Assembly (NCBI GenBank): GCA_964035545.1
Contig: CAXIUT010000237.1
Location: forward strand, 1-34,084
DNA length: 34,084 bases
Direction: 5' to 3'
From: Bugula neritina
Lineage: Eukaryota; Animalia; Bryozoa
A program made the position numbers and the translations under genes. Below the pieces are notes generated by a model. The model did no database searches. It was given only the letters and a program-made list of their open reading frames with translations, and had not been told where the DNA came from. Of this stretch, positions 1-33,007 are shown piece after piece (position 1 is the stretch's first letter; every line of letters begins with the position of its first letter).

Positions 1-80
1 CAACCCCAACCCCAACCCCAACCCCAACCCCAACCCCAACCCCAACCCCAACCCCAACCCCAACCCCAACCCCAACCCCA
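1..80 (-). repeat. Left telomere, (CCCCAA)n
   Basis: Perfect C4A2 repeats from base 1, followed by about 200 nt of AT-rich spacer; this is the oligohymenophorean (Tetrahymena-type) telomere repeat. Confidence 0.98.
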
Positions 81-2753: not shown

Positions 2754-4164
2754 TCATAAATTAATCAACTACTATGCTTAAATATTACGCCTTAGTACCA
2801 TGATCTTGCCTCTGTTTCCTAGTTAAGATCGACTAAAATAAATACTTTTAGGATGAGTAAAACGAATAAACTAACCATCGATCTGCAAATAGGTGCGATG
2901 TTTCTCTTCATCAGGATATTTATTAAAAGTTAAATAGAATGGACCTTATCCTTGTGTAATTCTGGAGGCAAAACCTCCAATCATTCGCTATAGAGCCATT
3001 CCAACACTAGACCCAAAACAGACTACCTACACCTTACCATCTTTTGACGATGTTGAAGAAGATTAACTCTTATTTTTGAGTTAGTTATCTTTGGCATTAT
3101 TCCATATCTTATTTACTCCTCCCATAAAACTATCAATATTCAAAAATATCATATTATAGTAGTCATTTTTAAGATTGAATTATGAATCCTATTTCTTTTA
3201 GTTTATTTTTTTAATAGATCTAAATAGTAATTTTGATTAACTGATTGGTTTTGTGTCTTATACTACTTTATTCAATTTTATCATTGATGATTACTATCTC
3301 ATCTTTAGACTACCATTCGGTTTATTCAACACCTTTTATGGATATATTGCTTAGTTACCAATTTATGGGACCACTTACATAGTATCAACTAGTTCTTGGA
3401 CAGTTTTAGTCTTAGTTGCAGCCTTAACTAATCCCATAGTACCATAGACCATCAAATTACCTATCCGACTGCCAGTTCTTCTTTTATCAAAAGAATATCC
3501 AATTTTACCATCAATTCCAAAACTAAAATAATTACATAAACTATAAGACACACTCATCTTCTTTTTACCCTCTGCATCTAACAACACCTGATTCTATCCA
3601 TTTTTGTCCACTTTCTAAAATTTACCATTCTCTATATCTAGCCAATGTACCTCATAAATTTAAGCCTTGATATCCCAAATATCGAATTCTTACTGTTCAG
3701 CCAAAAGCCACTTCTTTATCATCTTCTTTAGAGATCTAAAACTGTTTTCTATTAGTTGAGTCTTCTACTTACCCCAGCCCAAATACTGTGAAAAATCATT
3801 TCCTGTCCCCACAGGTATCACACCTAGTGGAATCTTCAATGGATTTATCTTGTATTTGTTCAATTATGATACTACCCACATGATAGTGCCATCACCTCCA
3901 CACACTATTCCGATTATTTTGTGTTATTATTGGGTTAGTTTACGAGCCATGTTGAAGGCTTTTTCTCTTTTGGTGAAAAGATCAAAAAAATATACCTCTA
4001 TTAGTTGGAAATTGTTATTGTTATCAATGGCTATGTTGAATTATACTTTTTAAATCTAGGTTTTAGATGGATAATACTTACTGGGAGAGTAGTTTTGCAC
4101 CTAATCCACCTCCTGAAGAGCTGTTGATGAAGAGAATGACTGTGCAGTAAGGTCTGTTTTACAT
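2754..4164 (-). CDS. Diacylglycerol kinase (catalytic plus accessory domain)
   Basis: FINSSSGGG, VCGGDGT, PVGTGNDFS, NYFSFGIDG and YLQIDGEF motifs; 22-nt intron at 4056-4077. Confidence 0.9.
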
Positions 4165-14875: not shown

Positions 14876-15794
14876 TCAAGCATCTTTTCCCATTCCTACC
14901 AGATGGAGTTTCTTTTTTTTTTTTTTTTTGGAGGCGTCTGGTTTGCTTTTGAAGTTTTGAGGATTTTTATTTCTCTGTTAGTTGTATTAGTGAGAATCGA
15001 AGTAATAACCCATTTGTCTCATAGCTTTTGATGTTGGAGCTTGATCTTTTACTGGCACTCTGGCCAGTCCAGTACTAACATCAAATTTAACATAATTGGC
15101 ATTTAATATATTTTTGTTTTTATCATTTATTTTCACATATTTGAAACCTTTTATACCTTGAAAATGTTCACTTGATACCTTCATGCCTTATTAGTTATCG
15201 ACCTATTGAAATTTCTTTTTAAGTAAATCTACTCTATTTCCAGAGTCTAGTTATTCTTATTATTATTATTACTATTATTCTTATTATTTTTATTTAGGAG
15301 GAGGTGGTGGTGGTTTAGCTCCAACTTTAACATAGTTTGATGGAAAAAAAACCTTTTATACTAGGCTTTTTTATCAAATGTCCTAACCACCATCCAGTCT
15401 AAAATGATTGTTCGACTAGTATCTTATCTCCTTTTTCAAAAGATAAATACTGTACTTATTCTTATCTATCTACTTGTCCTTATTATTGTTAGTCTAGTGG
15501 TATTTATTCTTGTTTATCTAGTGGTCTTTATTATTGTTTGTCTAGTTGTCTTTACTATTGTTAGTCTAGTGGTATTTATTCTTGTTTGTCTGATTATCTT
15601 TATTCTTGTTGATTTAATTTGTTTGTTTATTATTTGTAAAGTTTATCTAGTCCTTCTTTGGATAGTTAATGTTAATGTGATGATGATCTTTTTCTTTTTC
15701 CTTTATCCAGTTGATCTTATTAGTTAATATTTGATTGGTTGGAAGTTTTTAGTATTTTTGAGCTGAAGTCAAATAGAGCTTAGACTACAAACAT
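14876..15794 (-). CDS. SH3-domain protein with a large repeat insertion in the SH3, then poly-Pro and poly-Glu
   Basis: MFVVEALFDF, about 100-aa insertion, then QYLSFEKGDKILV, GWWLG and GFFPSNYV (the last needs one fewer T in the run at 15344-15351), PPPPP, poly-E and KAMRQMGYYFD. The end is uncertain because of a long homopolymer. Confidence 0.75.
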
Positions 15795-15955
15795 ATTTAT
15801 AAGTGTTTGAATTATTATTATCAATTAAATACTGGTTGATTAATTTTAAAAGTCAGTGATCTTGATTTAATAATAAAAGTTGATTTGATTGACCAAAGAA
15901 TGCAACTAAATAATAATAGATGAAATTTGTATGGTATAAATATGTGATTTGATGA

Positions 15956-16024
15956 GGGGTTGGGGTTGGGGTTGGGGTTGGGGTTGGGGTTGGGGTTGGG
16001 GTTGGGGTTGGGGTTGGGGTTGGG
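15956..16024 (+). repeat. Internal telomeric tract 1, (GGGGTT)11 GGG
   Basis: 69 nt of perfect telomere repeat between the divergent SH3 and UBA5 genes. Confidence 0.97.
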
Positions 16025-16033
16025 AGATATAAA

Positions 16034-17167
16034 ATGTAGGAGTAGAAGGGAGTGATATAAAAGCTGATGCAATAGCGTAGAAAGATAGATCAGCAAATAA
16101 CAGATATCATATCTAAATCATACAAAAAATACCAAATGAGCGAAGTAGTTAAAGATGATAATCCCTATAGTCGATTAATGGCATTAAAAAAGATGGGAAT
16201 TGTGAATAATTATGAAGTACATGCTTTATGAATATAGGACATAAAACTAAAGACAGTGTTGATAGTCGGAGTGGGAGGAATAGGATCTGTGACTGCAGAG
16301 ATGTTGACTCGTTGCGGAATAGGTAAGCTCATTATCTACGACTATGATACAGTTGAACTAGCCAACATGAATCGTCTCTTCTTCACACCATCGCAAATAG
16401 GCTCATCTAAAGTACAAGCAGCTAAAGAAACACTTCAAGCAGTCAATCCTGATATAGTCATCGAGGCCTACCATATGAATATCACCACCCAGGAAGGATA
16501 TGAACATCTCACCAAAAGAGTACTAGAAGGAGGACTGCAAGGCTCGACTGATCTGGTGTTGAGTTGTGTTGATAACTATGGAGCCAGAATGACTGTTAAT
16601 TCTATCTGTAATCGGCTAAATAAGATATGGTTTTAGTCAGGTGTGTCTTAAAGTGCTTTATCTGGACATATTCAAATACTTATACCTGGGGAAACTGGTT
16701 GTTTCGGGTGTGCTAGTCCTTTGGCTGTTTCATAAGGAACTTAAAATACGATCAAAAGATAAGGTGTGTGTGCTGCGAGTCTGCCAACTACTATGGGCAT
16801 TGTAGCTGGCTTCTTAAGTCAAGCTGCTATCAAATTTTTACTTGATTTTGGTAGATTATCGCATTGTCTGTCCTATAATGCTCAAACTGACTTCTTTAAC
16901 TCCTATAAAATAGCTATAAATCCAGAATGCAAGGAACCAACTTGTCAGTAAGCTCAAAAGAAGAAGAAGAATGGTTAGTTTGTTTCATTGATTAATTTGG
17001 TTGAGAAGAAGAAGGAAGAAAAGAAGAAGGTGGAGCATAATGTGAATGAGTGGGGCATTTAGGTGGTGACAGTTGGTAGTAAAGATGAGAAAGAAGGTAA
17101 ATAAAAGGTTTAAATCAAAGAATCCTAAAATATTTAGGATCTTATGGCTGAATTAAAAGTCCTCTGA
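16034..17167 (+). CDS. UBA5: UFM1-activating enzyme E1 (UBA5)
   Basis: [63 protein letters not shown] and [18 protein letters not shown] 21-nt intron at 16217-16237 contains an in-frame TGA. Upstream in-frame ATG at 16034; alternative start at 16136. Confidence 0.96.
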
Positions 17168-17250
17168 TATAAAATATCAATCTATATCTATTATTTTGAC
17201 CTTTTATTCATAAATATCAATAATCATCCGTCATAACTATTTATCATTTT

Positions 17251-17322
17251 CAATAATCATACATAATACCTATCAATCAATAATCATACATAATACCTAT
17301 CAATCAATAATCATACATAATA
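17251..17322. repeat. 27-bp tandem repeat (CAATAATCATACATAATACCTATCAAT), about 2.7 copies
   Basis: Units at 17251, 17278 and 17305, in the spacer between the convergent UBA5 and Vps39-like genes. Confidence 0.85.
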
Positions 17323-17398
17323 TCTATTAATATCAACAATATAGAACTGTCACTTCTGTTACAATAATATCGATATGTTTTAAGATATAGCAAATAGA

Positions 17399-20209
17399 TC
17401 AGTATTTGAATGTTTTTTCGAAGTCTTGTTTGGTAACTGGACAGATGGTACTTTTCTATTTTTTGACGCAAGCCTGATGGCAAACATTGGCATTGGGGTA
17501 AACTACAAAATACTAAATAGATATGGCTATTACCTTGTCTGAAATGGGTGTATCGCAGATGCAGCATTTCTTTTTGTAAGTGAACCTGAGGTATGCTCTT
17601 TTGGCTTGAATTAGATTGTGTTAAACGTTAAGCAGGTCCATTTCTGAAAGATGTTTTGATGTATATGTGGCTCTTCTTTCGTGCAAGGTATGGATAATAG
17701 CTGACTAGAGGAACTGATAAATGCCACTATCGTTTTATGTGAGAAGCCAATTATCAGGAATCATTTAAAGAACACTAATTGGATCTAGCTATGGCTCGCT
17801 TGAATGCTTTTTTATAAATGTTATAATATCTTTTTTCCAGAGAACATGAGAATTATTTTTGGAGGATTAGTATGACCGATACATGGCTAGTAGGAGTTTG
17901 AAGTAAATAGTTAGAGTACCTTCTCGATTTCTGGTGCAATATTATTAAGCTTATTTCGTCATCTCTTTGCTGATATATTTTTTTAATGCTTCTTAATGTC
18001 TTTTTTATCTAGAGTATAAAAAGATTTAATCTTATAGTAGCCACTAGCACTTCTATATTCTTTTGAGGATGGGCTAGGATGCATATTTGGATTATGAATT
18101 TCTCAGTAGTTTTCTCATTTTTTATAATTTTTATGCGAATTAGGGCGTTTTTAGTTACTATTTGCTATCTTTGCTGTGAAGATCGAATAAAGCATCGAGA
18201 TATATTAAGAGAAGTTTGGTATGATAGGCTTAAATATCAGTCTTTTTTTAGAATACTATGATCTAGAGATATAATTCAAGATACTTGGTATTTTTATCTA
18301 TTTAAAAATTTTTTATTATCTCTTCTGGTTGGATAAAGTTAGTATCAACCATCTTGAAAAATGTCATGCCTATCTAAGGCCTTTTCTTTAATATCCAGAG
18401 TAGCTTCTTATAGACTTATTGTTTGCTTTAGAATAGAGTTAGCAATCTAACTGCTTATTGGTAGGCTTGGAGTCTTTGAATGTCATCTTTACTATTTTAA
18501 GCAACATATTTCCATCCTTCGAAAGCTTAATCAAGTTTTTAGAAGGCAGTATAGAATCTAGGTTTAAGACTGGCAAATGAGATAATGTTTTAGTTATTTT
18601 TGATAAGACTTTAAAACTAAAGAAATAGTCTTTTACAATAGATATTCTGGTTGTCTTTAAAGAAACGTTACAGAAGAGCAAATGATTACATACTAAGGTG
18701 CAGTCTAATTATATAGTAATCTATTATTTATAGCAATTATTAAGGAGTGGCTGGTGATAATTTTTGTTTCACTAAAGAATATCTAGAACTATTCAGTGCT
18801 ATCTTCACTTTAAATAAATTCATACGACTCAAATACTACTATCGTTTATACTACAAAACTTATTTCAAAAATAGTTTTGATTTCTTTTTTAGTTAGTTTT
18901 CCTATTCTTTGCCTCTGCCTGATTTTTCATTCAAATATTCTACTATTAAGGTATTCATGTATTTATCTGGTTTTATTCCTTTCAAAGAATCTAGTTCTGA
19001 AGTCATTGATAGTTAAGGATACAACAAAACCAACTCTCTGATATCAAAGTTAATGGATCTTAATATTTATCTAGCTTTATCTAGTTCCATTCTACGTAGG
19101 AGAGGCCAAATAGCATTCATTTTCAAATCTTATATTTTTTGTTAGTTATCAGGTCCGCTATTTTGAATTAGTAGATTTAAAGCATCTTCCACTCGACCTC
19201 TTTCTAATAATGCCTTTATTTGGGTCTAAACAGGAATCTTGTAGAGGTAAAGAAGTTCATCTTTGCCAAATATGAAAGGACGACCAGAAGTAATGCCTCG
19301 AATATTAGCTGATAAATTGATCTATTGAACAAAAGAACATCTCTTTGGATCGTCTATTTTAATTATGAATTACAAATGCTAAAAATTTGTAGAGTTCCTT
19401 CGCAGAGGATGAGGCAATAGTTGGTCTAGAGTCCAATATCAATTAATGACCTTTAGGTGGTGAGAGTGATGTTATCTTTTTGGATGGGTTGGAATTGGCT
19501 GTCCATAAATAATCCGATATTGTCCATGAAAAATACCAGTTAGTTGGATCCTGTTACTTTGAAGAAGGGGTTCTTGCTTTGGAGTGGTCCTTTGGCCAAT
19601 GCAAAGTTTTTTTATATGTTGTAGCTTTAATAATCTTTTTTGTAGCTGCATACTATATGTTTTCCATTGAAGCCAACTTTATTAGGTAGCTAGCTTAAAC
19701 TAAACTTTTTAGACTACTCTAATTTTTTAGTTTGAGGGTTCATAAAAGCGATGTAGCCTTCTTTTCTTTTGGAGACTATTGCTATTCCTTGGATAGTTCC
19801 TTATTTTTGAGCTTAATTAACACTAAAATCATGAACCTTCGTCATTGTTTGAATACTTTTTGTGCGATAAGATCTGCTTTTCTTAAGGCAGAATCAACCA
19901 GATAAAGCTTTTAGTCAGCCAATGCTAAAACAGAAGATAGAGATGGATAGCATTGTAGTTTGTCTATCCTATGCTTGGTTATATTTTTAGATTGTTCTTG
20001 AGTAGATTTAGCAATGATGTCAGGATCATTGACTCGAACAGGATAGAAATAGATGTTCCCTCAATATGTTTAGATATACCTTTATCGTCTCCAATATAGA
20101 GAAAGTCATTGAGAACATCAGCTGTTGTTATTTTGTAGTTGAATTACCTTCGAATGGGTCGAATTTCAAACACCTGAATCGCACTATTCTTTTCCTTGCC
20201 TCGGTCCAT
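17399..20209 (-). CDS. Vps39/Vam6/TGFBRAP1-like (CNH domain, helical repeats, C-terminal zinc finger)
   Basis: N-terminal CNH-like LYIGDDKGNIYFY; C-terminal CCICDTPISDKYFVVYPNANVCHQAC...CPVT, typical of the Vps39 family. Several introns of about 20 nt; the middle of the gene was not fully traced. Confidence 0.8.
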
Positions 20210-20335
20210 AAGATACAACTTTTAATCGATTTATAACTAATTTGTCAGAATTATCCTTGATCATTTATCTACTAAAATCTATATCTAAACTACTAATACC
20301 TAAATACTAACTATCAAGTCATTATTACTAGTCAT

Positions 20336-20439
20336 TATCGAATGTTTCTAATATATCGAATGTTTCTAATATATCGAATGTTTCTAATATATCGAATGTT
20401 TCTAATATATCGAATGTTTCTAATATATCGAATGTTTCT
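20336..20439. repeat. 18-bp perfect tandem repeat (TATCGAATGTTTCTAATA), about 5.8 copies
   Basis: Identical units, located between the NHE stop codon and the Vps39-like start. Confidence 0.92.
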
Positions 20440-20505
20440 CAAATGTTTATGAGTCAAGGATTAAATTTATCCTACAAAGATATTAATATCTATATTTATA
20501 ATCTA

Positions 20506-22114
20506 TCACTGGTTGCTATCTTCTTCAATATCGATTCTTCTATCAGTATCTTCTTTTTTTTATTTCATTGAATAGGTTAAGTCGAGATCTTACCCATCTT
20601 GTTTTGAAAAGATAGGCTGGATGTACTTCTTCTAAAAACTTTGAAATGGATTCTTCTCATTTTTGGGTGAAGCAAGAGCAGTATCTTCTTTCTAAAACCC
20701 TCCAATGTTCTTGTACTTGGATGATAGAGTGGCCAACTGATCACTCGGTCTCTACATTTGTGAACTCATCAAATGTCTGAATTAGATGGATGTACGTTGA
20801 TGCTTTTTATTGAAGAGGACTACCTGAATCAAGTTATATTATTTTGGCAAATTTTTGCATAAAAGAGGATCCCACCAAAGTAGTCACCATCACTATACAC
20901 AGAGCGACAGTCATTATAAATTTTTTATGACTTGTACCTATTTGCAGACATAAAGCAAATGCAATAACGCCTCTTACTTGTCCACACCACCAACATATTT
21001 TGAGTTCTTTGTTGGTTAGTAAAAACTTACGATTGATAACTTTGTAGAATAGAGGCATGATGAAGACCATGACTGCTCTTATAAAAGGCATTCCAACCAA
21101 CATCAAAGAAGCCATAAATACAGCCAACCACTCTCCATCTATACTGAGGACTGATGCTCCTAGATACGAGAAAACGAAGGCTTCAGAGATATAGCTGACA
21201 GTTTAAAAAGCTAGTCCTGTGCCTCTTTGTGATAGTTAAGATATATTCATGTACGAGTAGTGGCCCATAATAATAGCACAGGTGAAAAGAGTTATGATGC
21301 CTGATAGTCCTAGTAGCTATCCCAGCAGATAGGTAAGATATCCATTGAGGAGAATCAAACTGGTTTATTTAATTGGATGTTGGTTGATAGACTAATATAT
21401 CTTAAATAGATAACTTAATCCAAAACCACTTAAAGTACCGAAAGCTACACTGAAAAAAAAAAGATAGCAGAAGTCTAAAAACATTTGTTCGACGACTTTG
21501 TAGCTGAATTACTAAATGAGTACGTGAATTATCCTCCAGCTTAATCGAGCTACAATTTTGATATAGTGCCGAATAGAATGATAGCTACTGCGTCGTTGAT
21601 GATACCTTATCCGAAAAGAACGGCATTGAGGACTGGGTATTTTTAAACTCGGATCATAGAGTTGGCTGCTACCGTGTCTGTTGCGCACATTACACTGCTT
21701 AAAAGTAGAATTTATGTGAGAGTCAATATCTAAAAGAAAGAGTTTAGGAAGATTAAATACCCTGCCAGCAAAATGAAGCCGATTATTGTTCCAAAAATTC
21801 CTAAGAAGCTGATCATTCCAAAGTTTTCAAAGAAGAGAGATTTTCGAAGACTGTAGCCAGCTGAGAAGATGATGGGCGGGAGAATTAGAGCGAAGAAGAG
21901 TTCGTTTGAAAAGTCGATTTACTTGCCGAGGGCCTGTTGAAGATATTTATACATATTTCGATATGAGAGATGTGAGGAGTCCCATGATGATGGCGATGCT
22001 AGCTTCGTGGAGGTAGGCTATTTTTTTGTTTTAGATGATGTGCGAGGTGAGGACGTAGACAACGAGAATAACAACGAAGATGAGTGCTTCAACGTGGAAA
22101 GTCTAAGCTGACAT
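20506..22114 (-). CDS. Na+/H+ exchanger (CPA1/NHE family)
   Basis: [50 protein letters not shown] and [14 protein letters not shown] motifs; 19-nt intron at 21934-21952 and further introns. Confidence 0.92.
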
Positions 22115-22281
22115 TTCAAAATATTTATAAATAGATTTTAAAAACAATACCTTACAATACCAGCTCTATTTATCTAATATTAAAAGTTAAATCTTTTTTG
22201 ATCGAATAGTGTTATCTTTATTTACTTTTTGATTGAGATGATGTAAACTATTAGTTGAAACATAATTATTAATTTTAAGAT

Positions 22282-23129
22282 ATGTACGGACAGGGACAAA
22301 GTAAATATTATGACACATAGGTGGTTTTGGAGGACAAGGGCAAGGATTTGGAGGCGGACAAGGACAACAAGGCTTCGGAGGACAAGGACAGCAAGGTTTT
22401 GGAGGACAAGGGCAACAAGGATTTGGAGGACAAGGACAAATGGGAGGTCAGCAAGGATTTGGAGGTCAAGGACAGATGGGAGGACAAGGTTTTGGTAGTC
22501 ATCAGCCACAAGGAATGGGAATGAACCGTTGGAGTCAGGGCAACAATAATCACCATCAAATGAATGGATACACTCAGGTAGATTATAGTCAAGGATGGAA
22601 CCAAAACGTGCACGGCAATATGCTTGAACAGAATGTTAACAAGGTGTTCCAGAAGTACGATAGAAACAATAGTGGTCAACTGGAAGGTCAATAATTTTTT
22701 AACGCTTATAAAGAACTCTGTCTCACTATGGGAATGGCTCCTCCTCAAAACTATCAAGATGTTTGGAACGCTGTTAACCAATGTGATAGCAATAGAGACG
22801 GAAAAGTTAATAAACAAGAAATGCTTGTCTTGTTCAAACAAATTCAAGGAGTGCAAGGGCAAGGACAAGGACAAGGTATGGGAGGGCAGCAGGGTTGGGG
22901 AGGTCAACAAGGAATGGGCCAGCAAGGTATGGGAGGTCAGCAAGGCTGGGGAGGTCAACAAGGTATGGGAGGTCAACAGGGAATGGGAGGACAACAACAA
23001 GGTTGGGGAGGTCAACAAGGAATGGGCGGACAACAACAAGGTTGGGGAGGTCAACAAGGCATGGGAGGACAAGGAGGTCAGCAGGGCTGGGGAGGTCAAC
23101 AAGGTATGGGAGGACAACAAGGTTGGTGA
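22282..23129 (+). CDS. Gly/Gln-rich two-EF-hand protein, paralog 1
   Basis: GFGGQGQ repeats, VDYSQGWN, EF loops DRNNSGQLEGQE and DSNRDGKVNKQE, GGQQGMG/GWG tail; intron at 22301-22320. Confidence 0.88.
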
Positions 23130-23243
23130 TAGTCAAATAGTTACCTTGCTTATTTTAATATTAAAAGCAAATTCCTTTAACTATCTTTTTTAATAGATGG
23201 AAAGAAAGGTGGTTTTTATTTTTAATTAGATTGACAAGATACG

Positions 23244-23815
23244 ATGTTCAACCAAGGACAAGGTATTTCAGTTGATATTTAGGTGGATTCGGAGGAGGTT
23301 ATGGAGGTCAAGGAGGCTTCCAACAACCAGGATTCGGAGGACAACAAGGTGGAATGATCAACCTTGGAGGACAAGGTGGCATGGGCTTCAATAGATGGGG
23401 ACAACAAAACACAGGATACCAGCAAATGAACGGCTTCAATAATGTAGACTACTCAGGAGGATGGAACCCAAGTATTCATGATCAAATGTTGCAAAATAAC
23501 ATTAACATCGTCTTCCAGAGATACGATATGAACATGACTGGCCAACTAGAAGGCCAGGAGTTCTTCAATGGTTACAGAGACCTTTGTTTGATGATGGGAA
23601 TGGCTCCTCCGAATAGTTACCAAGATGTGTGGAATGCAGTCAACCAGTGTGATTCAAACAGAGATGGCAGAGTCAACAAGATGGAAACTTACAACCTTTT
23701 CAAGAGAATTCAAGGGATCAATTCAGGACAGATGATGGGAGGAAATATGGGAATGGGAGGAGGAATGGGAATGGGTATGGGAGGGGGTATGGGAGGAGGA
23801 ATGGGAGGTTGGTGA
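23244..23815 (+). CDS. Gly/Met-rich two-EF-hand protein, paralog 2
   Basis: VDYSGGWNP, DMNMTGQLEGQE and DSNRDGRVNKME; intron at 23263-23282. Confidence 0.88.
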
Positions 23816-23955
23816 TCATCCATTCTATTATCATACAATGATTTTTTAGTTTTTGACTTATTTTGAATTATATTTCTCTCTATATTTTATTGTTTGATTC
23901 TAAGATCTTCTAATAACTAAGTTGTATTTATTTAATTGATAAAATCACACAAGCA

Positions 23956-24722
23956 AGTAAGTTAGTTGTTATTCAGTGCGTCCAGGCTATAATCCTCGAG
24001 ATCCTTATGGTGTTCATGCTCCTCAAGGTCACCAACAGCAAGGAACAGTTATTGTTCACAACAAAAATACAGGAAAAACACAAATTATCATTCCAGGGCA
24101 ACAACAACAACCTCAGTACGGTCATCATCATCAACCACGCCATCAACAACCCCACTATACACCACCTGCACAAGGTCATGGATTCGTCCCACCACCAAGT
24201 AGTGGAGGAGGAATGGGAATGGGAATGAATATGGGAATGAATATGGGAGGAGGAGGAATGGGAGTAGCTATTAATCTTGGAGGAGGAGGCATGGGAGGAG
24301 GCATGGGAGGTGGCATGGGAGGTGGCATGGGAGGTGGCATGGGTTTTAACAAGTGGGCAAATAGTAATGTTAACTACCAGGCAATGCAAGGCTTTCATAA
24401 TGTTGATTATTCAGGAGGATGGAACCCAAATGTGCATGACCAGATGCTTAAAAATAACATCAATACAGTTTACCAGATACATGATATTAATCGTTCGGGG
24501 CAATTGTAAGGACAAGAGTTTTTTAATGCGTATAAAGATCTTTGTTTGAGGATGGGTTTGGCTCCTCCGATGAGCTATCAGGAAGTGTGGGCAAAGGCTT
24601 TGCAGAGTGATACCAATGGAGATGGACAAATAAGTAGGATGGAAATGTTTATGTTGTTCAAAAGTCTACAAGGAGTCAATGCTGGAATGCAAATGCAGTC
24701 AGGAATGGACATGATGTGGTGA
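23956..24722 (+). CDS. Pro/His/Gly/Met-rich two-EF-hand protein, paralog 3
   Basis: Start ATG is formed by splicing A|TG across the intron at 23957-23976; VDYSGGWNP, DINRSGQLEGQE and DTNGDGQISRME. Confidence 0.85.
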
Positions 24723-24759
24723 TTGGTATATCCTTATCTTTAATATCATAATAATTTAA

Positions 24760-24834
24760 GGGGTTGGGGTTGGGGTTGGGGTTGGGGTTGGGGTTGGGGT
24801 TGGGGTTGGGGTTGGGGTTGGGGTTGGGGTTGGG
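24760..24834 (+). repeat. Internal telomeric tract 2, (GGGGTT)12 GGG
   Basis: 75 nt of perfect repeat, starting 37 nt after the stop codon of paralog 3. Confidence 0.97.
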
Positions 24835-24998
24835 ACAAAGGGTAATATATGAAGAACAAAAGCATGATGAACTTCTTGTTTAATGAGATAGTTTACAGCT
24901 AGCATTCTAAACTCTATCAGAATTACCCTTCAAAATATAGCTTAGATTAAAGATATATATGAATCAGAGGATGAGAGGACTATATTGATTGATAAAAG

Positions 24999-25591
24999 AT
25001 GTTTGGTGGTATGGTCTGATTAACGTAGGTGGTATGGGCATGGGCGGCATGGGCATGGGAGGTATGGGAGGAGGCATGGGTATGGGAGGAATGGGAGGCT
25101 TCAATAGGTGGGGAAGTCCTGGTATGAACTATATGGGAATGAACGGATTTTGCAACGTTGACTATTCTGGAGGATGGAATGCAGGTATCCATGACCAGAT
25201 GCTCCAGCAAAAAATATAAATAGTGTTCCAGCGCTATGATATGAACTTTTCTGGACAACTGGAAGGTCAGTAGTTTTTCTATGCTTACCGAGACCTCTGT
25301 CTAATGATGGGAGTTTGTCCTCCAATGAACTATCAAGACGTCTGGGCAGCTGTAGTTCAGAGTGACTACAACGGAAATGGTAGAGTTAGCAGAATTGAGC
25401 TCTTTATGCTCTTCAAACGCATCCAAGGCATTCAAGGAGGAATGGTCTACAACAACTGGAACATGGGAGGAGGAATGGGAGGCATGGGCATGGGAGGCAT
25501 GGGCATGGGAGGCATGGGCATGGGAGGCATGGGCATGGGAGGCATGGGTATGGGAGGCATGGGCATGGGAGGAGGATGGGGAGGTTGGTGA
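24999..25591 (+). CDS. Gly/Met-rich two-EF-hand protein, paralog 4
   Basis: Intron at 25009-25028; VDYSGGWN, DMNFSGQLEGQE and DYNGNGRVSRIE; (GMGMG)n tail ending GWGGW. Confidence 0.88.
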
Positions 25592-25646
25592 TATTCATCT
25601 GCATAACTTTATAGCTTGCTTTTGTTTATTTTTAACTAAAAATAAA

Positions 25647-26414
25647 TCATTGTTGCAGTTTGGAAAGAGGTATTTGAAACAGTTTGGGATAATCCTAGTT
25701 TTATACTAAGTCAATTATATTGATAATTTTCAAGTGACTTTTCTTGGTTTGATGCCTTGCTACATGTTTTATTTTCTTGCTTTTCCGTTTCTTAGATGCT
25801 CTAATTCCTGATGTTGACTTAATTTAGGAGTTTTAGTTTGACTGGATGATTTCTGAATAACTTTGATTGAGAGAGTTATCAATAGACTCTTGAATAACTG
25901 CCTCCCACCATTTCTGTTCTTTTTATTATTTTTCTTAGTTTTTTTGTGGTTAGTCTCCAAATACAAATTTTAATATTTCTGGGTCGCTTTCGCTACTCTG
26001 GTTGATTTAATTGACTGAGTGTTATTTTTGTTCGATGATTGATATTTCTAGTCCATTTTTATCAATGAAAAGAGGTTCAGGAGTATCAACTCGATATACT
26101 TGTGGAAGTATTTAATCAGTTCTTTTCTATTAAAGCTATTCACTCTCATATACATCACATTCATTTGTAAGCATCTTATTTACTTGGTGTTTTCTTTTTG
26201 CATTCTTAGTTCTTTTTTGTCTGCTTGAATTGGATATCAATTCGCTTTGGTTTTATTGGATAAAACTTTTAAAGGATTTTCTTTTTTTTAGGGTTTTTTG
26301 TTTAATTGATTTGTTTGATTTATTGAGGTTGTGTTGGTTATTGGACCTGGTGATTCTTTGGATGACTTGTGAAAATTTGTTGGTTAGTTTTTTAAACATT
26401 TAAAAGATTTTCAT
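25647..26414 (-). CDS. Hypothetical low-complexity protein (255 aa)
   Basis: ATG-to-TGA open frame of 256 codons under code 30; basic N-terminus and acidic middle; no recognisable domain. Confidence 0.55.
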
Positions 26415-26582
26415 CTGCTAGTATATAGTAATTTATTATTGATGATTGAATGTTATGATAAAATAAACTCCTACAAATCTATATGCAAGTCTTTATATTT
26501 AGAATCTCATCAGAACAAATTGATCTATTTCAGGCATAAACTTTATAAACACAATTGAATAGAATCAAAGTAGTGAAGATAA

Positions 26583-27350
26583 TCATTTGCTTTTATTTTT
26601 ATGTACTTTTTCAGTTTTTCCTAAATCTAATAACATTTCTCTGATATCTTAGTTTTCACTGCTATCTTGTTCTAATCCGGTCTTTCCTCTACTTCTTAAA
26701 TGATAGTGCTTACGACTATTCGAGTTGAAAGTCAAAACACCCTAACGATCCCCCATCTTCTTCTTGCTACACCCAGGATTCAATTCTTCTTCTTCATCTT
26801 CTATTGTCTATGGCTTGCTCCTTTTATAAGCTCTTCTTCACAAATGCAAACTCTGCGCTTTCAGACCACTCCTCCATACCACTAATACTTGGCAACTCTT
26901 CGTCTAAAGCACAGCCGTATACTGTAGGAGTTTTGCGAGTGGCTCTGATGACTGAAATGGCAGAAATAGAGAAACTGTCACTCTTAACCGAGGCAGAATC
27001 CGAGAGAAGTATTTTTGAATCTTAGGCAATGAAGCCTAAGTTAAGAATATTGTTGGAAAAGTCGTCGTCGTCGATGGGACTGATTTGAGGAGTGGACTTA
27101 TCGAGAAGAGACATTTCTCCTGGAGTGTTAACAGTTCGGTTGAAAAAGAGGTTCTGCATACCTTTATCACTATTATTAAAATGCTAGCCTTGCTGAGTAG
27201 CTGCTTCTTCTTTATCGTTTTCTTTTACTTTTTTGGAGTTGATCATCCCCTAGAAGTACACACTCTTATATTAAAGATAAAGGTGACTCTTTCAAAAATA
27301 GTATATAAAATATTGAACCAGCAAAAATCTTTAACTATTGTTCAACATGC
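26583..27350 (-). CDS. Hypothetical acidic protein or degraded gene (boundaries uncertain)
   Basis: Coding-like composition with a long open frame from about 27400 to 26794, but the start is unclear (possible ATG at 27159) and frame changes are needed near 26770-26820. Confidence 0.3.
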
Positions 27351-27458
27351 TAACAAAAAGATGCTAAATACAACCAATCAATCAGATATACTATTCTAAC
27401 TAGTCAAAGGAAGTTGTCGACTTTCAAGAGAGGCGGTTAAATGATAGTGTATGGGTGA

Positions 27459-28058
27459 GAATAAGAGTAGGAACTACAAGATAAGAGTAGTAACTACAAG
27501 ATAAAAGTAGTAGCTAAAAGATAGTAGAAACTAAAAGATAGTAGTAACTAAAAGATAAGAGTAATAGACTAAAAGATAGGAGTAATAGACTAAAAGATAG
27601 GAGAAACTAAAAGATAGTAGTAACTAAAAGATAAGAGTAATAGACTAAAAGATAGGAGTAATAGACTAAAAGATAGGAGAAACTAAAAGATAGTAGTAAC
27701 TAAAAGATAAGAGTAATAGACTAAAAGATAGGAGTAATAGACTAAAAGATAGGAGAAACTAAAAGATAGTAGTAACTAAAAGATAAGAGTAATAGACTAA
27801 AAGATAGGAGTAATAGACTAAAAGATAGGAGAAACTAAAAGATAGTAGTAACTAAAAGATAAGAGTAATAGACTAAAAGATAGGAGTAATAGACTAAAAG
27901 ATAGGAGAAACTAAAAGATAGTAGTAACTAAAAGATAAGAGTAATAGACTAAAAGATAGGAGTAATAGACTAAAAGATAGGAGAAACTAAAAGATAGTAG
28001 TAACTAAAAGATAAGAGTAATAGACTAAAAGATAGGAGTAATAGACTAAAAGATAGGA
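27459..28058. repeat. Higher-order minisatellite: about 7 x 76-bp unit made of four CTAAAAGATA-headed subunits (17+21+21+17)
   Basis: Units start at 27531, 27607, 27683, 27759, 27835, 27911 and 27987; degenerate precursor subunits lie at 27459-27530. Confidence 0.95.
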
Positions 28059-28062
28059 TTAA

Positions 28063-29674
28063 TCACTTAGCTAGCAATACAAAGCCATCCCAGCCGATCA
28101 CATACTACTCGATTATGTTGATGTTCCTATAAGCTGCCAACATTGAATATCCTTTGCTTAACAAAAAGGAATATTCTTTATTGATATGAGCTCTCGTCAT
28201 TGAATATTTTTGTTGTATTATTACAAACTATGGATCTTATCCTTTGGACATTTCGTAGAATAGTTGCTGAGGATGTTATTTCAACTAAATGGTCTCATCG
28301 AAATGTTCTAGCTTTCGAAAGGGGGAGGTGTCTATCAGTTTAAAGTTGATATTTCGTTGGAGAATGGTCATTAAGGGCAAAGAATGTGGCTAACATAGAT
28401 ACATAACAGTTAACTTAGGTTGTTCTTATAATGGGTATTTATCTATTTGTTTTCGAAGGTCTCTTAGAATCTATGTTCCACCAGTTTTAGAGCCAATATT
28501 TAAACTAACGAATAGCAATAGATTTATTGATATCACTATCAGAAGTACTACCTTTATTTCTATTAGTTTTTGAAAGCCTTTTATACTTAGAATCAATAAA
28601 AAAGGAGTTACAACTAGTAGAAATCGAGGTTCTTTATGTTTAGATAGTGATAGTAAGAGTATGATTAGAACTGTTAGTATAAATAATTACCAATATTTTT
28701 TGCCCTACCATTATTATAATACTTCAACCTTCCCCTCCTAGATATCTTCTTCTCTTTTGACTTTCATTCTTTTCCACCAGTTCTTGATAAATACTTTATT
28801 TTATTTGATCGATAGTACGAATGGGATGAGGTAAGTGGCCATGATCAGAGGGACAGTAAGATAGAAGTACTATAGAAAAGAGTTGACTCCATAAAGTTCT
28901 GAAAATTTATAAAAGATGTTATACTTAATATCGACATAGATACTTTGAAGAAGTTGTAGTCAATAGAAAGTAATTTCTAATACCATAAACTACCTACAAT
29001 AACACTGAAAACTCCAATCACTACTCTAAGTAAAAAGATGAATACAAAGTGATGGCATTTTTAAAAATAAATTTTATTTTATTATTTTATTTACTGAACA
29101 ATTAATAGGGCCAGATGACCATCCATAGAAACAAACTAGTTGGTCTTAGACTAAAATTTACAATTACTATCGACCGACTGATGAGATCATTTAGATAGTT
29201 TTCCGATCTAGTAGTCCAGAAATAAAAAGCTATCACTATCAAACATGTTTATGCGCTATTGATGTAGATACGATTTAGCATAGAAAAGTAGTACCAGTTG
29301 GTTAGTAAACTTAGTATTATTCCAAATGAAATATTTTTAACGTAGTAGCTGGCAGTCAAAATCAAGAAGTAGTCTGCTGATGTACTTAGCAATAGCTGCA
29401 TTACTTTTGGTGCTATTTATTTTAAATAGGTGGTGCAGAAGGTATGTTAGCAGAGATAGTAACCTAAAGAGAGATAGAGCTGATAGAGAGGACTTCGAAT
29501 TGGTTATTCCATCGTCCATTACCAACTCAAATAACCATAACCATAATAAAAATGATAAGCCACCTATGAACCTTGCCAGTACTCATCAGCTCGATCGAAA
29601 TTGTAGTCCAAGTATAACTGTAGTATTCGCAAAAGTAGCAAGGATATCCAAGCTACAAATAACTCCCTTCTCAT
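28063..29674 (-). CDS. PIGB: GPI mannosyltransferase 3 (PIG-B/Gpi10; Alg9-like GT22 family)
   Basis: DEYWQGSEVAYHFYYGYGYLSWEW, PIRS, APKVMQ, INSAETCL, LRPTS, YNFFKYN..LYG and SKHKEPRFL motifs; two 20-nt introns near 29035 and 28930. Confidence 0.88.
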
Positions 29675-30384
29675 ATCCTATTGCTATTATATTAATTGAA
29701 TAGATTTTGTTTATAGATAATTTATATAATCGATAGTTATAGATAATTAGATGAGGAAGGGTGGAAAAAGATGATTGGAAGAGTAGTGGGTGGAGCTGGA
29801 CGTCAAATAAGTTATTTTATAGATATTGGAATAGATGTTAGCAGTTTAAAGGAGTATGGGGTAAAAGTGAGACAACTTGGCAATTCTATGAATGGATGTT
29901 TATGTTGAGAGGATGTTGAATTGTGAGCCAAAAGATAGTTTTCATAGTAAAGAGTTTAAAAACTTGAAGAACAGCAAAAATAAGCCATAAAGGTATTCAT
30001 TTATGACGAGTCTTAAAATAGTAAATGGTGTTTATTTAAAGGAATTAGAGTTTAGATCAACATAAAATAACTAAAATTAAAAGAATACAAACTAAATCAT
30101 TTGATAAGATATTAATATCTTAAAAAAAAGATAAAAAATTATGAAATGATAAATAGAGATCCATTAAAAATAGTAGCTTATTTCAATAACTTGAACTCTT
30201 AACCTGTTATTTTACTTATAAATTATTGGATCATCACTATCATTTCAATTAACCCTCACCTCTATATTTAAACTTTATCCTGGCATGATAGCATGAACAA
30301 TTATTACTAAGATAAAACTATCATAGTTTATTGATATTTATTTTATATAGTATTTATTGATGAAGCAATATAATATCCTAATTG

Positions 30385-33007
30385 TCAATGATTTAGTCCT
30401 TTTACCTTATTGCTTCTATCTTTAAAAGCATCTTAGATTTTTATTTTACCTAAAATACCTCCAGAACCATCTCTTCTAAATAATTCCTTCATCAAAGAAG
30501 ACTCCTTCCTTTCTTTCACCAAAGAAGACTCCTTCCTTTCTTTCACCAGAGAAGACTCCTTCTTTTCTTTCACCAAAGAAGACTCCTTCCTTTCTTTCAC
30601 CAGAGAAGACTCCTTTTTAGACTTATTTAAATTCTCTTTAGATGTCTTTATTTATCCTTTCTATTTGAAGTTTATCAAGTTAGAATTAAATTATTTAGCT
30701 TAAGCTTTCTTTTAGATAATTTTGTATAATCCTAGTCTTTTATCCGAACATACTTAATCTAGGCAGTCATTTGATTGACGTTTGCTTTCATCTATCATCT
30801 AGGTCTTTGAACTGTTTTGGACATTGTACTTTCTACGGTTGAAAAGTAAGTCGTTGATTGATCGAGGTAGGTTTTTACTTGAAACCTTTTGAATTAATCC
30901 AGAACTACCTGTACAAACATCACTGCCTCTTTCTTTATTAATATAAAAATACTTTTAAAGCTTTTTATTTATGTCATAGTAGGCATGTTCTTTGAAACTT
31001 TTACAGAAAAAAATTATTAGTTGAATCTTTAATCAACTTTTTTTTAATTAAATTATTTTTGAGGGCAATTTTGAGTACAATTTTCTAATGTTTCTTCTAT
31101 TTATCTTTTCCACTTATCTTTTAATAGTATATTTTTATCATAAAGTTTGACATGTTAAAGGTAGTTAGCCATAAGTTATTTTCCTAGGTGTCGATAGCTA
31201 TCATTAGTACACTGTTTGTAGATAGACTATTCTCCGTCATCTTCTTGTGATGGCTAGAAATGTGAGACATTAAGTTGATAAACCAAAGCTTTAGGAAACA
31301 ACTAATTGATAACACAACAAAAGGACTAATTGCTATTTTTTTAAAAGAAGAAACTGTCTTCAAATGAAATCAATTTGTTCCTTCTTGATAATACAAAAGG
31401 AAATATTCTACTGTCTTCACATTGCTACTCATCATTTCTGACGCCTAAAATAGACGAAATTAATCTATCTAGATAAAATATTACTGTTGATGATTGGATG
31501 CTAAGTTGAGACACATGGCTATAGGATGCTGTTTATTAATATTAACCATCCATTCTTTTAGACAGTGTAGTTCTGATTCATATAGAGCATGTGGCTGCTT
31601 CCAGCATTTCTGCAAATCACTGCCTGATAAATTAGATGAACTACTCCCAAATCGAATGCCATCAATATTGAACCTATCCAAATGCTTATTTATCCTACTT
31701 TGCAAAAAGATTATAATTTTGATTAATATACTATTAATAAATAATAATCAATCAATGATATTTATTTTCTCCTTAATTCTTAAATTTTATACCTTTTGAT
31801 TCTTTTTGGGGTTGGGGTTGGGGTTGGGGTTGGGGTTGGGGTTGGGGTTGGGGTTGGGGTTGGGGTTGGGGTTGGGGTTGGGGTTGGGGTTGGGGTTGGG
31901 GTTGGGGTTGGGGTTGGTTTTCTTTCGAATCACATAGCCATTGACAATAGACCCACAAATAGTCTTGCCTATTTCTACCTTTTAGACTTTAGTTAGGCCT
32001 CTTACTTTCTTGAGAATAGCTCTACTAAAATATTTCTAGCATTATAGAGTACCATATGAAGAATCTAAAGCAAATGCTAAGACATCTCTTTTGTTTTTTA
32101 CTTTGATTTAAAATGTTAAATTATAGTACAACTAATCTCTCTTGCTCTAGATCTCCATTTACGATTTTCTGAAACTAATATTCTCTCCACAAAGATGCCA
32201 TCCTTAGCTAAAAGGTTCCTTCCCTGTTTCTCTAAACCCATTCAATTGACAGTACTTGACTCTCATTCCTTTTTCAAACATTTTTCCCATATCCTTGGTC
32301 TACTTATCTCTAGAAGTACCAAATTCATGATTTTAAAGGTGTAGTAGCCTTCTTGTCCAAATTATACTGAAAAGTAAAACCATCCGACCTCTTTGCAACT
32401 GTTGACATCATTCTGTAAAAATAGTTCGTATTCATATGGATCTTTCTAAATATGATCATAGTTACTCGAAGAGCCGCAAATAAGTTGCCTCCTTAGAAGC
32501 TAGAACAAAAGGTAGGATCGAACGAACACCCTCTGTTATTTTTGCTGTCTGGTAGTAAAGATCTACGACTGTTATCAGCCATTTGTAGCCCTAAGTTAGC
32601 AGGAAAGGATGTTTATTGATATATTTGTTGGAAAGGCACATAAAATCCTGTCATTATTCTTGTTCTTAGGTTAATGTCTTTTTGCATGTTGTATTAACTA
32701 TTATCGAACTTCAAAAAAACTATCTGTTCTGATTTACTTTTTAGGTAGTTTCCTAAATAATCAAAGGAGTTAAATGTTTAGCAATATTTAATTAACTAAG
32801 TGTTTCTAGTTTTGGGTGGATTGAATTGAAAGTTATTGAGTCTTTGATCATTTTTCGTTCTGCATTAAAACAAAAGTACATCAGCTTGAAGGTAGGTATT
32901 ACATCTGGAGAGTACTTTTCATTGATGAGTTAATTGGCTGGAAGACGTTTCAGCATAGGCTGTAACTATTAAAATTCAGATTAAGGCTGTTTTCCCTCTC
33001 TTTGCAT
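30385..33007 (-). CDS. Cytosolic carboxypeptidase (M14D, Nna1/CCP)-like gene, catalytically degenerate and interrupted by an internal telomere tract
   Basis: N-half (33007-31918): [45 protein letters not shown]-half (about 31720-30385): [39 protein letters not shown]. Several 20-nt introns. Confidence 0.8.
30493..30616 (-). repeat. Coding 27-bp repeat (KESSLVKER, about 5 copies) in the CCP-like tail
   Basis: GAAGACTCCTTCCTTTCTTTCACCA(A/G)A units visible on the + strand. Confidence 0.85.
31808..31917 (+). repeat. Internal telomeric tract 3, (GGGGTT)18 GG
   Basis: 110 nt of perfect repeat inside the CCP-like gene. Confidence 0.97.

Follow-up and report, generated by a model that had tools for sequence, protein, structure and literature searches.

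The three internal telomere tracts in the 34084 bp stretch of contig CAXIUT010000237.1 that was analysed (the window) are very probably telomere-bearing read ends that were stitched into the contig, each replacing about its own length of real DNA and each marking a shorter form of a ciliate chromosome; for tracts 1 and 3 this would hold by analogy with tract 2, at which the most direct evidence was obtained. The affected contigs are those of a cobiont, a ciliate in which UAR codes for Glu, rather than of the labelled host. The features discussed below are listed in Table 1.

Table 1. Telomere tracts and flanking genes in the 34084 bp window.
Feature	Position (bp)	Strand	Basis and remarks
Terminal C4A2 telomere, left contig end	1–80		Repeat scan
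Last gene of block 1	14879–15824	-	Homologue in related species; right limit estimated near 15824
Internal tract 1, 69 nt of perfect G4T2	15956–16024	+	Repeat scan
UBA5 (ThiF family), first gene of block 2	16034–17164	+	PF00899, E = 1e-36
Gly/Met/Gln-rich gene with weak EF-hand C-terminus	23276–24722	+	EF-hand below curated cut-off
Internal tract 2, 75 nt of perfect G4T2	24760–24834	+	Repeat scan; contigs of independent runs
Tandem paralogue of Gly/Met/Gln-rich gene, just past tract 2	24999–25591	+	~69% DNA identity; start codon uncertain
Internal tract 3, 110 nt of perfect G4T2	31808–31917	+	Repeat scan; next two T ambiguous
Terminal G4T2 telomere, right contig end	33986–34084	+	Single GGGGG irregularity, 12 nt before the end

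A repeat scan of the contig confirmed the three perfect, co-oriented G-strand tracts of 69, 75 and 110 nt that were reported in the preliminary description, and none of 100 shuffles of the sequence contained any telomeric 18-mer match. The absence of a head-to-head CCCCAA partner, reported at the same time, was borne out at every internal tract, and the sizes given for the blocks between the tracts (16, 8.8, 7.1 and 2.2 kb) were correct. At the left edge of all three tracts AT-rich unique sequence was followed by GGGGTT. The right edges of tracts 1 and 2 ended in GGGGTTGGG followed by A, and that of tract 3 ended in GGGGTTGG followed by TTTTC; the right edge of tract 1 was in the phase TTGGG, as at the contig ends. 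The flanks are indeed asymmetric; tract 1, for example, stopped 9 nt short of the start codon of UBA5 (ATG at 16034 bp). The left boundary of tract 1 (15955/15956) is a telomerase-type junction and probably a telomere addition site. By analogy with tract 2, the stitch point of tract 1 would lie at 16024/16025 and that of tract 3 at 31917/31918, or as far right as 31919/31920.

Tract 2 was compared with Logan de Bruijn contigs of the public runs X1, X2, X3 and X22, which come from three studies (X3 from the third). Single contigs of X1, X2 and X22 matched the window between 24324 bp and 24752 bp (23305 bp and 24752 bp for X2) and again from 24842 bp onward. The contigs of these three runs had 101 nt between positions 24752 and 24842, where the window had 89 nt, and the X3 contig extended 116 nt leftward beyond 24842 bp. 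Every 31-mer in a Logan file is distinct (PMC12424806), which means that a perfect 6-nt repeat can extend over no more than ~36 nt in a Logan contig and that the 101-nt bridge is therefore not tract 2. On the basis of this rule, and not of the letters of the bridge, the real spanning DNA at site 2 is about 87 nt of ordinary, non-telomeric sequence. Absence of the tracts from spanning sequence had been named in the preliminary description as the observation that would speak against its reading, and at tract 2 the contigs from four runs crossed the site without a telomere tract. A heritable interstitial repeat or a telomerase scar should be present in independent spanning DNA, but none was present there at tract 2.

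To the left of tract 2 the window corresponded to the main haplotype of X1, and was set apart from X2 by five SNPs and a net length difference of -12 nt (indels +3, +12, -3 and -24). To the right, an alignment of the window with X2 showed no SNPs over 2.5 kb and only a 1-nt indel at 26828 bp, which was common to all four runs, while eight SNPs separated the window from X1. The contig switches haplotype exactly at tract 2, from X1-like to X2-like. The 87 nt skipped at site 2 are the sum of the tract (75 nt) and the net haplotype indel (12 nt), if the unseen part of the overlap is taken to hold no further indels, and this sum fits the appending of a read by an overlap length that was measured in the first read. 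Positions 24503 and 26828 of the window disagreed with all four runs, as unpolished sequence from single reads would do. Two small ORFs beside tract 2 had no exact match in public contigs, and a 32-mer from the left flank had no exact match in the JGI metagenomes.

The blocks that adjoin tracts 1 and 2 were found to be colinear. Contig L024 of a related species (2813–3676, minus strand) matched the last gene of block 1 (14879–15373 bp of the window, minus strand) with 60% over 167 amino acids, and the homologue of this gene lies upstream of UBA5 on one contig in the related species. UBA5 of the window has a 21-nt intron near 16210–16230 bp and reads UAA and UAG as Glu; the best match among those listed in protein searches was 83% identical. 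The Gly/Met/Gln-rich gene ends in a TGA stop (24720–24722 bp) 37 nt ahead of tract 2, and its tandem paralogue follows the tract, which shows blocks 2 and 3 to be true neighbours. Blocks 2 to 4 of the window are single-copy in the assembly. A chimera of unrelated chromosomes was ruled out by the synteny at tract 1, the tandem paralogues at tract 2 and the lack of head-to-head G4T2/C4A2 junctions, and random chimeras of separate chromosomes were also contradicted by the conservation of length and the strand bias.

Replacement of real sequence by a tract of similar length was also indicated in SDHA on contig C231, where a 94-nt tract starts 21 nt inside the coding sequence. Between the ATG and the NTLFKKY codon, C231 had 119 nt, tract included, and the closest relative, which lacks a tract, had 121 nt; the comparison is with another species, and presequence lengths can vary. 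The 94-nt tract would so stand for ~96 nt of presequence plus intron (the intron being 22 nt).

Across the assembly, 215 tract ends were on the contig plus strand and 26 on the minus strand; another count gave 207 and 57. The minority-strand ends, about a tenth, came largely from longer contigs (C66 and C105 among them) and may loosely reflect mixed build directions. The outer edges of the tracts were mostly TTGGG, which is the phase seen at contig 3′-ends and, as its complement CCCAA, at contig 5′-ends, and all 27 of the G-strand tract starts inspected on other contigs had an AT-rich flank followed by GGGG(G)TT. Many of the right flanks elsewhere in the genome were plain AT-rich spacer. On C30 a 70-nt tract was only 18 nt from the terminal tract, and a 182-nt tract on C15 lost its phase after 105 nt. 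No tract-free second copy (haplotig) of the C10 and C37 junction regions was found in the assembly, and 25 junctions of other contigs, scanned for genes that stay open across both flanks, gave no clear case of an interrupted conserved gene. Tract 2 carries the marks of an artefact in its absence from independent spanning sequence, its haplotype switch and its length replacement, while beyond tract 2 such marks were found in the length replacement of SDHA and in the genome-wide orientation of tracts, which is tied to the build strand.

These observations are best explained if the contig was tiled from single long reads of macronuclear DNA of the UAR = Glu ciliate, some of the reads being derived from shorter molecules with a real telomere internally, at 15955, 24759 or 31807 bp. 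On extension, the assembler would retain the entire read including its telomere, and the next read, from a longer molecule, would be appended at the overlap length in the coordinates of the first. The outcome would be a telomere inside the contig that displaces a roughly equal number of true bases. A tract would then lie on the strand of contig construction, with an inner edge where a telomere had genuinely been added and an outer edge where the molecule ended. We infer the read ends at the three sites, the responsible assembler step and the likeness of tracts 1 and 3 to tract 2. A layout rule of the miniasm type predicts the opposite strand and no indel effect, and no assembler is named here. 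Long-read mis-joins at unaligned read overhangs are alike in that an unaligned tail is kept at the join, the haplotype switches and the offset is based on coordinates; a literature search found no paper with this exact signature for telomere overhangs.

The idea of nested chromosomes in the preliminary description survives in part, as shorter forms ending at the sites are, to judge from the tracts themselves, the likely source of the telomeres, whereas internal tracts as true chromosome structure are not supported. Marks of alternative telomere addition were found in the direct joining of unique sequence to a telomerase product and in alternative ends at one locus in the related species, where contigs L026–L028 start with a telomere and L024 and L025 reach 1–2.6 kb further. 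This locus, together with the position of the telomere-type junctions in AT-rich intergenic DNA and the well-known alternative fragmentation of Oxytricha (PMC6937825), would also suit a programmed nested set that shares the left end, with major forms ending at 16024, 24834, 31917 and 34084 bp and with a large proportion of molecules using the sites. We consider such a set unlikely, as the de Bruijn contigs of four runs are unbroken through site 2, which makes a telomere branch there absent or minor, and as the SDHA tract, inside coding sequence, looks like sporadic healing and not like a programmed site. At site 2 the continuing, tract-free form was seen, and the embedded tract points to the telomere-ended one. 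A nested set bears on how frequently the ends are used, and does not make the internal tracts real. The right edges of the tracts were also considered as natural left chromosome ends, given the closeness of tract 1 to the UBA5 start codon and the start of Logan contigs of the related species 12–24 nt ahead of that ATG; this was rejected on the AT-rich right flanks elsewhere and the single 18-nt 'block', and the 9 nt to the start codon leave no room for a promoter.

Chimeric library reads that were then assembled faithfully could also have introduced the tracts, for instance by polymerase run-off at a telomere end followed by a template switch during amplification. From such events one would expect G-strand tracts that share one orientation and stop at the C-strand 5′ terminus, as was observed, and the source may, as a guess, have been a small organism that called for low-input amplification. 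A template switch would, however, not be expected to rejoin the true neighbour with an offset that matches the tract in length, and neither synteny and tandem paralogues at the junctions nor any tie to the contig strand would be expected, which makes this origin highly improbable. We regard as extremely improbable that some macronuclear molecules truly carry internal tracts, through an undescribed repair in which telomerase caps a break that is then joined to the adjacent segment, the products being rare and caught by single long reads. The inner edges do resemble genuine telomerase addition, the adjoining blocks are true germline neighbours, and a minority form with less than about one-quarter of the depth would be dropped when de Bruijn contigs are made and be invisible in the Logan comparison. 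Against this, a process in vivo has no reason to conserve length as in 75 + 12 = 87 and in 94 against ~96 nt (SDHA), and no cause to switch haplotype at a tract; it should ignore the arbitrary strand of a contig and by symmetry give both orientations, not the 215:26 seen, and it would not produce the 18-nt 'block' of C30. The earlier proposals of a cap-then-rejoin process and of a modular chromosome are thus left unsupported by the spanning contigs without a tract, the length replacement, the haplotype switch at tract 2 and the orientation along the assembler strand.

With the tracts read as stitched-in read ends, they hold no new chromosome biology. The public assembly has at least ~240 places at which a telomere tract stands for some 40–180 nt of real sequence, and as some of the replaced stretches are inside genes (e.g. 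SDHA), gene models and 'internal telomere' statistics taken from the assembly are wrong. The inner tract edges probably chart, at no extra cost, where alternative telomere addition occurs in a ciliate that uses the peritrich-type code (UAR = Glu); macronuclear genome data from this group are scarce. A one-strand bias, the molecule-end phase at outer edges, conserved length and a haplotype switch together offer a possible screen for other ciliate long-read assemblies.

In HiFi data of Blepharisma stoltei, telomere-bearing reads end at many internal macronuclear positions (alternative telomere addition sites, ATAS), usually as a minority per position and at most sites backed by one read, and the authors split and trimmed contigs at fragmentation sites by hand (bioRxiv 10.1101/2021.12.14.471607; PMC9942806). 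The Blepharisma telomeres are soft-clipped read ends outside the published contigs, whereas those described here are still inside the assembled contigs; the two cases are further set apart by organism, telomere unit (G4T2 here) and genetic code (UAR = Glu here). Internal telomere addition sites of Oxytricha trifallax yield nested chromosome isoforms, which assemblers merge into the longest (PMC3558436, PMC6937825). The Oxytricha sites are programmed and recurrent and belong to gene-sized chromosomes, whereas here at least one site falls within the coding part of a gene, SDHA, and the four runs show site 2 to be minor. The micronuclear C4A2 blocks of Tetrahymena, which are heritable interstitial telomeric repeats present in every copy, likewise place repeats of the telomere unit away from chromosome ends. 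Unlike these blocks, tract 2 was missing from independent spanning sequence, was perfectly regular and had the length of a telomere.

The window, a contig of 34,084 nt, carried terminal repeats at both ends and three internal tracts of perfect G4T2 repeats on the + strand. Shuffled controls for these tracts gave no matches in 100 shuffles, a search of the window found no G3T3 variant units, and a head-to-head CCCCAA partner was absent at all three tracts. At each left edge, AT-rich unique sequence passed into GGGGTT without a gap; the right edges ended in ...TTGGG or ...TTGG, with unique sequence directly after. The preliminary description of the internal tracts was correct in all these respects (positions, strand, perfect repeats, edges and lack of a partner). 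Two tandem repeats were also located in the window.

Telomere-type tracts and other features in the window, in other contigs of the same assembly and in a relative
Feature	Sequence	Position	Strand	Remark
Terminal C4A2 repeats	window	1-80		left end
Tract 1, perfect G4T2	window	15956-16024	+	
Tract 2, perfect G4T2	window	24760-24834	+	
Tract 3, perfect G4T2	window	31808-31917	+	
Terminal G4T2 repeats	window	33986-34084		right end
UBA5 N-terminus	window	16034-16140		
UBA5 intron	window	16210-16230		21 nt, GTA...TAG
Perfect 18-nt repeat	window	20336-20439		5.8 copies
76-nt tandem repeat	window	27466-28058		7.8 copies, 98% matches
Internal and terminal tracts	C30	5191-5377		L044 1942-2128
Internal tract	C15	86484-86665		L036 1885-2066
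tRNA-like sequence	C14	18552-18582		L034 553 onward
SDHA intron	L056 (relative)	2774-2795		22 nt

Comparison with independent sequence in the window was made at tract 2 only. Logan (de Bruijn) contigs from four public runs (X1, X2, X22 and X3) were aligned to 23300-27400, with 24753-24841 masked. In X1, X2 and X22 one contig matched both flanks, with 101 nt between them vs 89 in the window, and in X3 the contig matching 24842-25504 extended 116 nt further left. By construction, each 31-mer occurs only once in an accession's Logan contig file (PMC12424806); a Logan contig thus has no room for a perfect 6-nt repeat of more than about 36 nt, and the bridging sequence is therefore non-telomeric. 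In place of the 75-nt tract of the assembly, the spanning DNA of the four runs, which came from three studies, thus has approximately 87 nt that are not telomeric, and the suggestion that tract 2 forms part of the spanning DNA failed in all four. As the Logan contigs were unbroken at 24759 and 24835, any telomere branch at tract 2 must be a minor one in these runs, if it exists at all.

Left of tract 2 the window matched the main haplotype of X1; against X2 it showed five SNPs and four indels (+3, +12, -3 and -24; net -12). Right of the tract it showed eight SNPs relative to X1 and none relative to X2 over 2.5 kb, the sole difference being a 1-nt indel at 26828. The source of the contig therefore changes exactly at tract 2. 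The base at 24503 and the extra A at 26828 disagreed with all four runs and are probably residual errors of unpolished single-read sequence.

It is very likely that the tracts exist in the assembly file but in no spanning DNA molecule, telomere-bearing read ends having been stitched over real sequence. The assembler would keep one read whole (v, haplotype 1, ending in the 75-nt telomere) and append a second (u, haplotype 2) from an overlap length counted in the coordinates of v; u would then lose 75 + 12 = 87 nt and the telomere would stay embedded in the contig. The skip predicted by this rule equals that observed (101 - 14 = 87 nt).

A chimera of unrelated chromosomes was excluded by the neighbouring genes. 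Tandem paralogues, confined to this contig, flank tract 2, one ending 37 nt before it and the next starting after it; furthermore, a related species (JGI metagenome, L024-L029) has, upstream of UBA5 on a single tract-free contig, the homologue of the gene that closes block 1 (left of tract 1). An additional cyclin-like gene was found upstream of UBA5 in this species. The blocks had been proposed as modular chromosome units, which was not borne out, and a cap-then-rejoin process found no support. Assembly-wide, tract ends of TTGGG followed by a non-G numbered 215 on the contig + strand vs 26 on the - strand, and a second search pattern gave 207 vs 57. Since contig strand is arbitrary with regard to biology, this bias points to how the contigs were built.

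Outer edges mostly ended in ...TTGGG. Contig 3' ends have this phase and contig 5' ends its complement (CCCAACCCC), and hence the outer edge, the inferred stitch point, is a molecule or read end. On C15, the phase of a 182-nt internal tract broke at a GGGGG after 105 nt, as though two read ends bearing telomeres had been stacked. C30 had a 70-nt tract, 18 nt of unique sequence and a 99-nt terminal tract, which implies two telomere addition sites approximately 90 nt apart. On C14, the tRNA-like sequence (GACACTGTGGCCGAGCGGTTAAGGCG...) began 1 nt past an internal tract.

A 94-nt tract on C231 started 21 nt into the coding sequence of SDHA. The closest available relative, 95% identical over 117 aa of the FAD-binding domain, had 121 nt between the ATG and the conserved NTLF-KY codons (a 33-codon presequence and a 22-nt intron). 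The same distance on C231 was 119 nt (21 + 94 + 4, the last four letters being the intron end), vs the 215 nt and frameshift that a plain insertion would make. Judged against this other species, the tract would stand in place of approximately 96 nt. Assembly G000 calls for caution, as telomere tracts very likely replace real sequence.

The inner edges, where the tracts meet unique sequence on the left, are telomerase-type junctions, and for this reason there are probably shorter molecules whose ends lie at 15955, 24759 and 31807. These edges are likely a map of telomere-addition sites in this ciliate. In the related species of L024-L029, the position at which the syntenic locus ended in telomere varied from sample to sample. 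In Blepharisma, the alternative telomere addition sites found with HiFi reads number in the tens of thousands, most of them resting on a single read (PMC9942806), and programmed chromosome isoforms are described in Oxytricha (PMC6937825). That a site lies within SDHA speaks for sporadic healing, at any rate there. Logan contigs of another related species (L021-L023, three samples) all began 12-24 nt before the UBA5 ATG, near the end of tract 1; this shared start may reflect a hot spot of telomere addition or an AT-rich spacer that is polymorphic.

The assembly (321 contigs, 216 Mb) seems to combine a host genome with that of a ciliate cobiont, with many of the small contigs being telomere-capped ciliate DNA. 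Contigs C1-C9 lacked G4T2 tracts and look like host genome; C1 and C4 were at least 27 Mb and 23 Mb respectively, and the SDHA on C1 was intron-rich. Many smaller contigs had C4A2 at the start and several internal tracts each, and in the small contigs UAA and UAG were sense codons and TGA was stop. Three of the four UAA/UAG codons in the UBA5 N-terminus aligned with Glu in relatives, and runs with DNA matching the window were labelled as three to four different organisms in three to four studies. Together, the telomere-capped small contigs, the reading of UAA/UAG as Glu and the matches in differently labelled runs indicate that the window contig comes from a ciliate cobiont that has the peritrich-type code. 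UAA and UAG were likewise sense in the SDHA of the relative (L056), aligned mostly with Glu, and its intron and that of UBA5 were 22 and 21 nt long.
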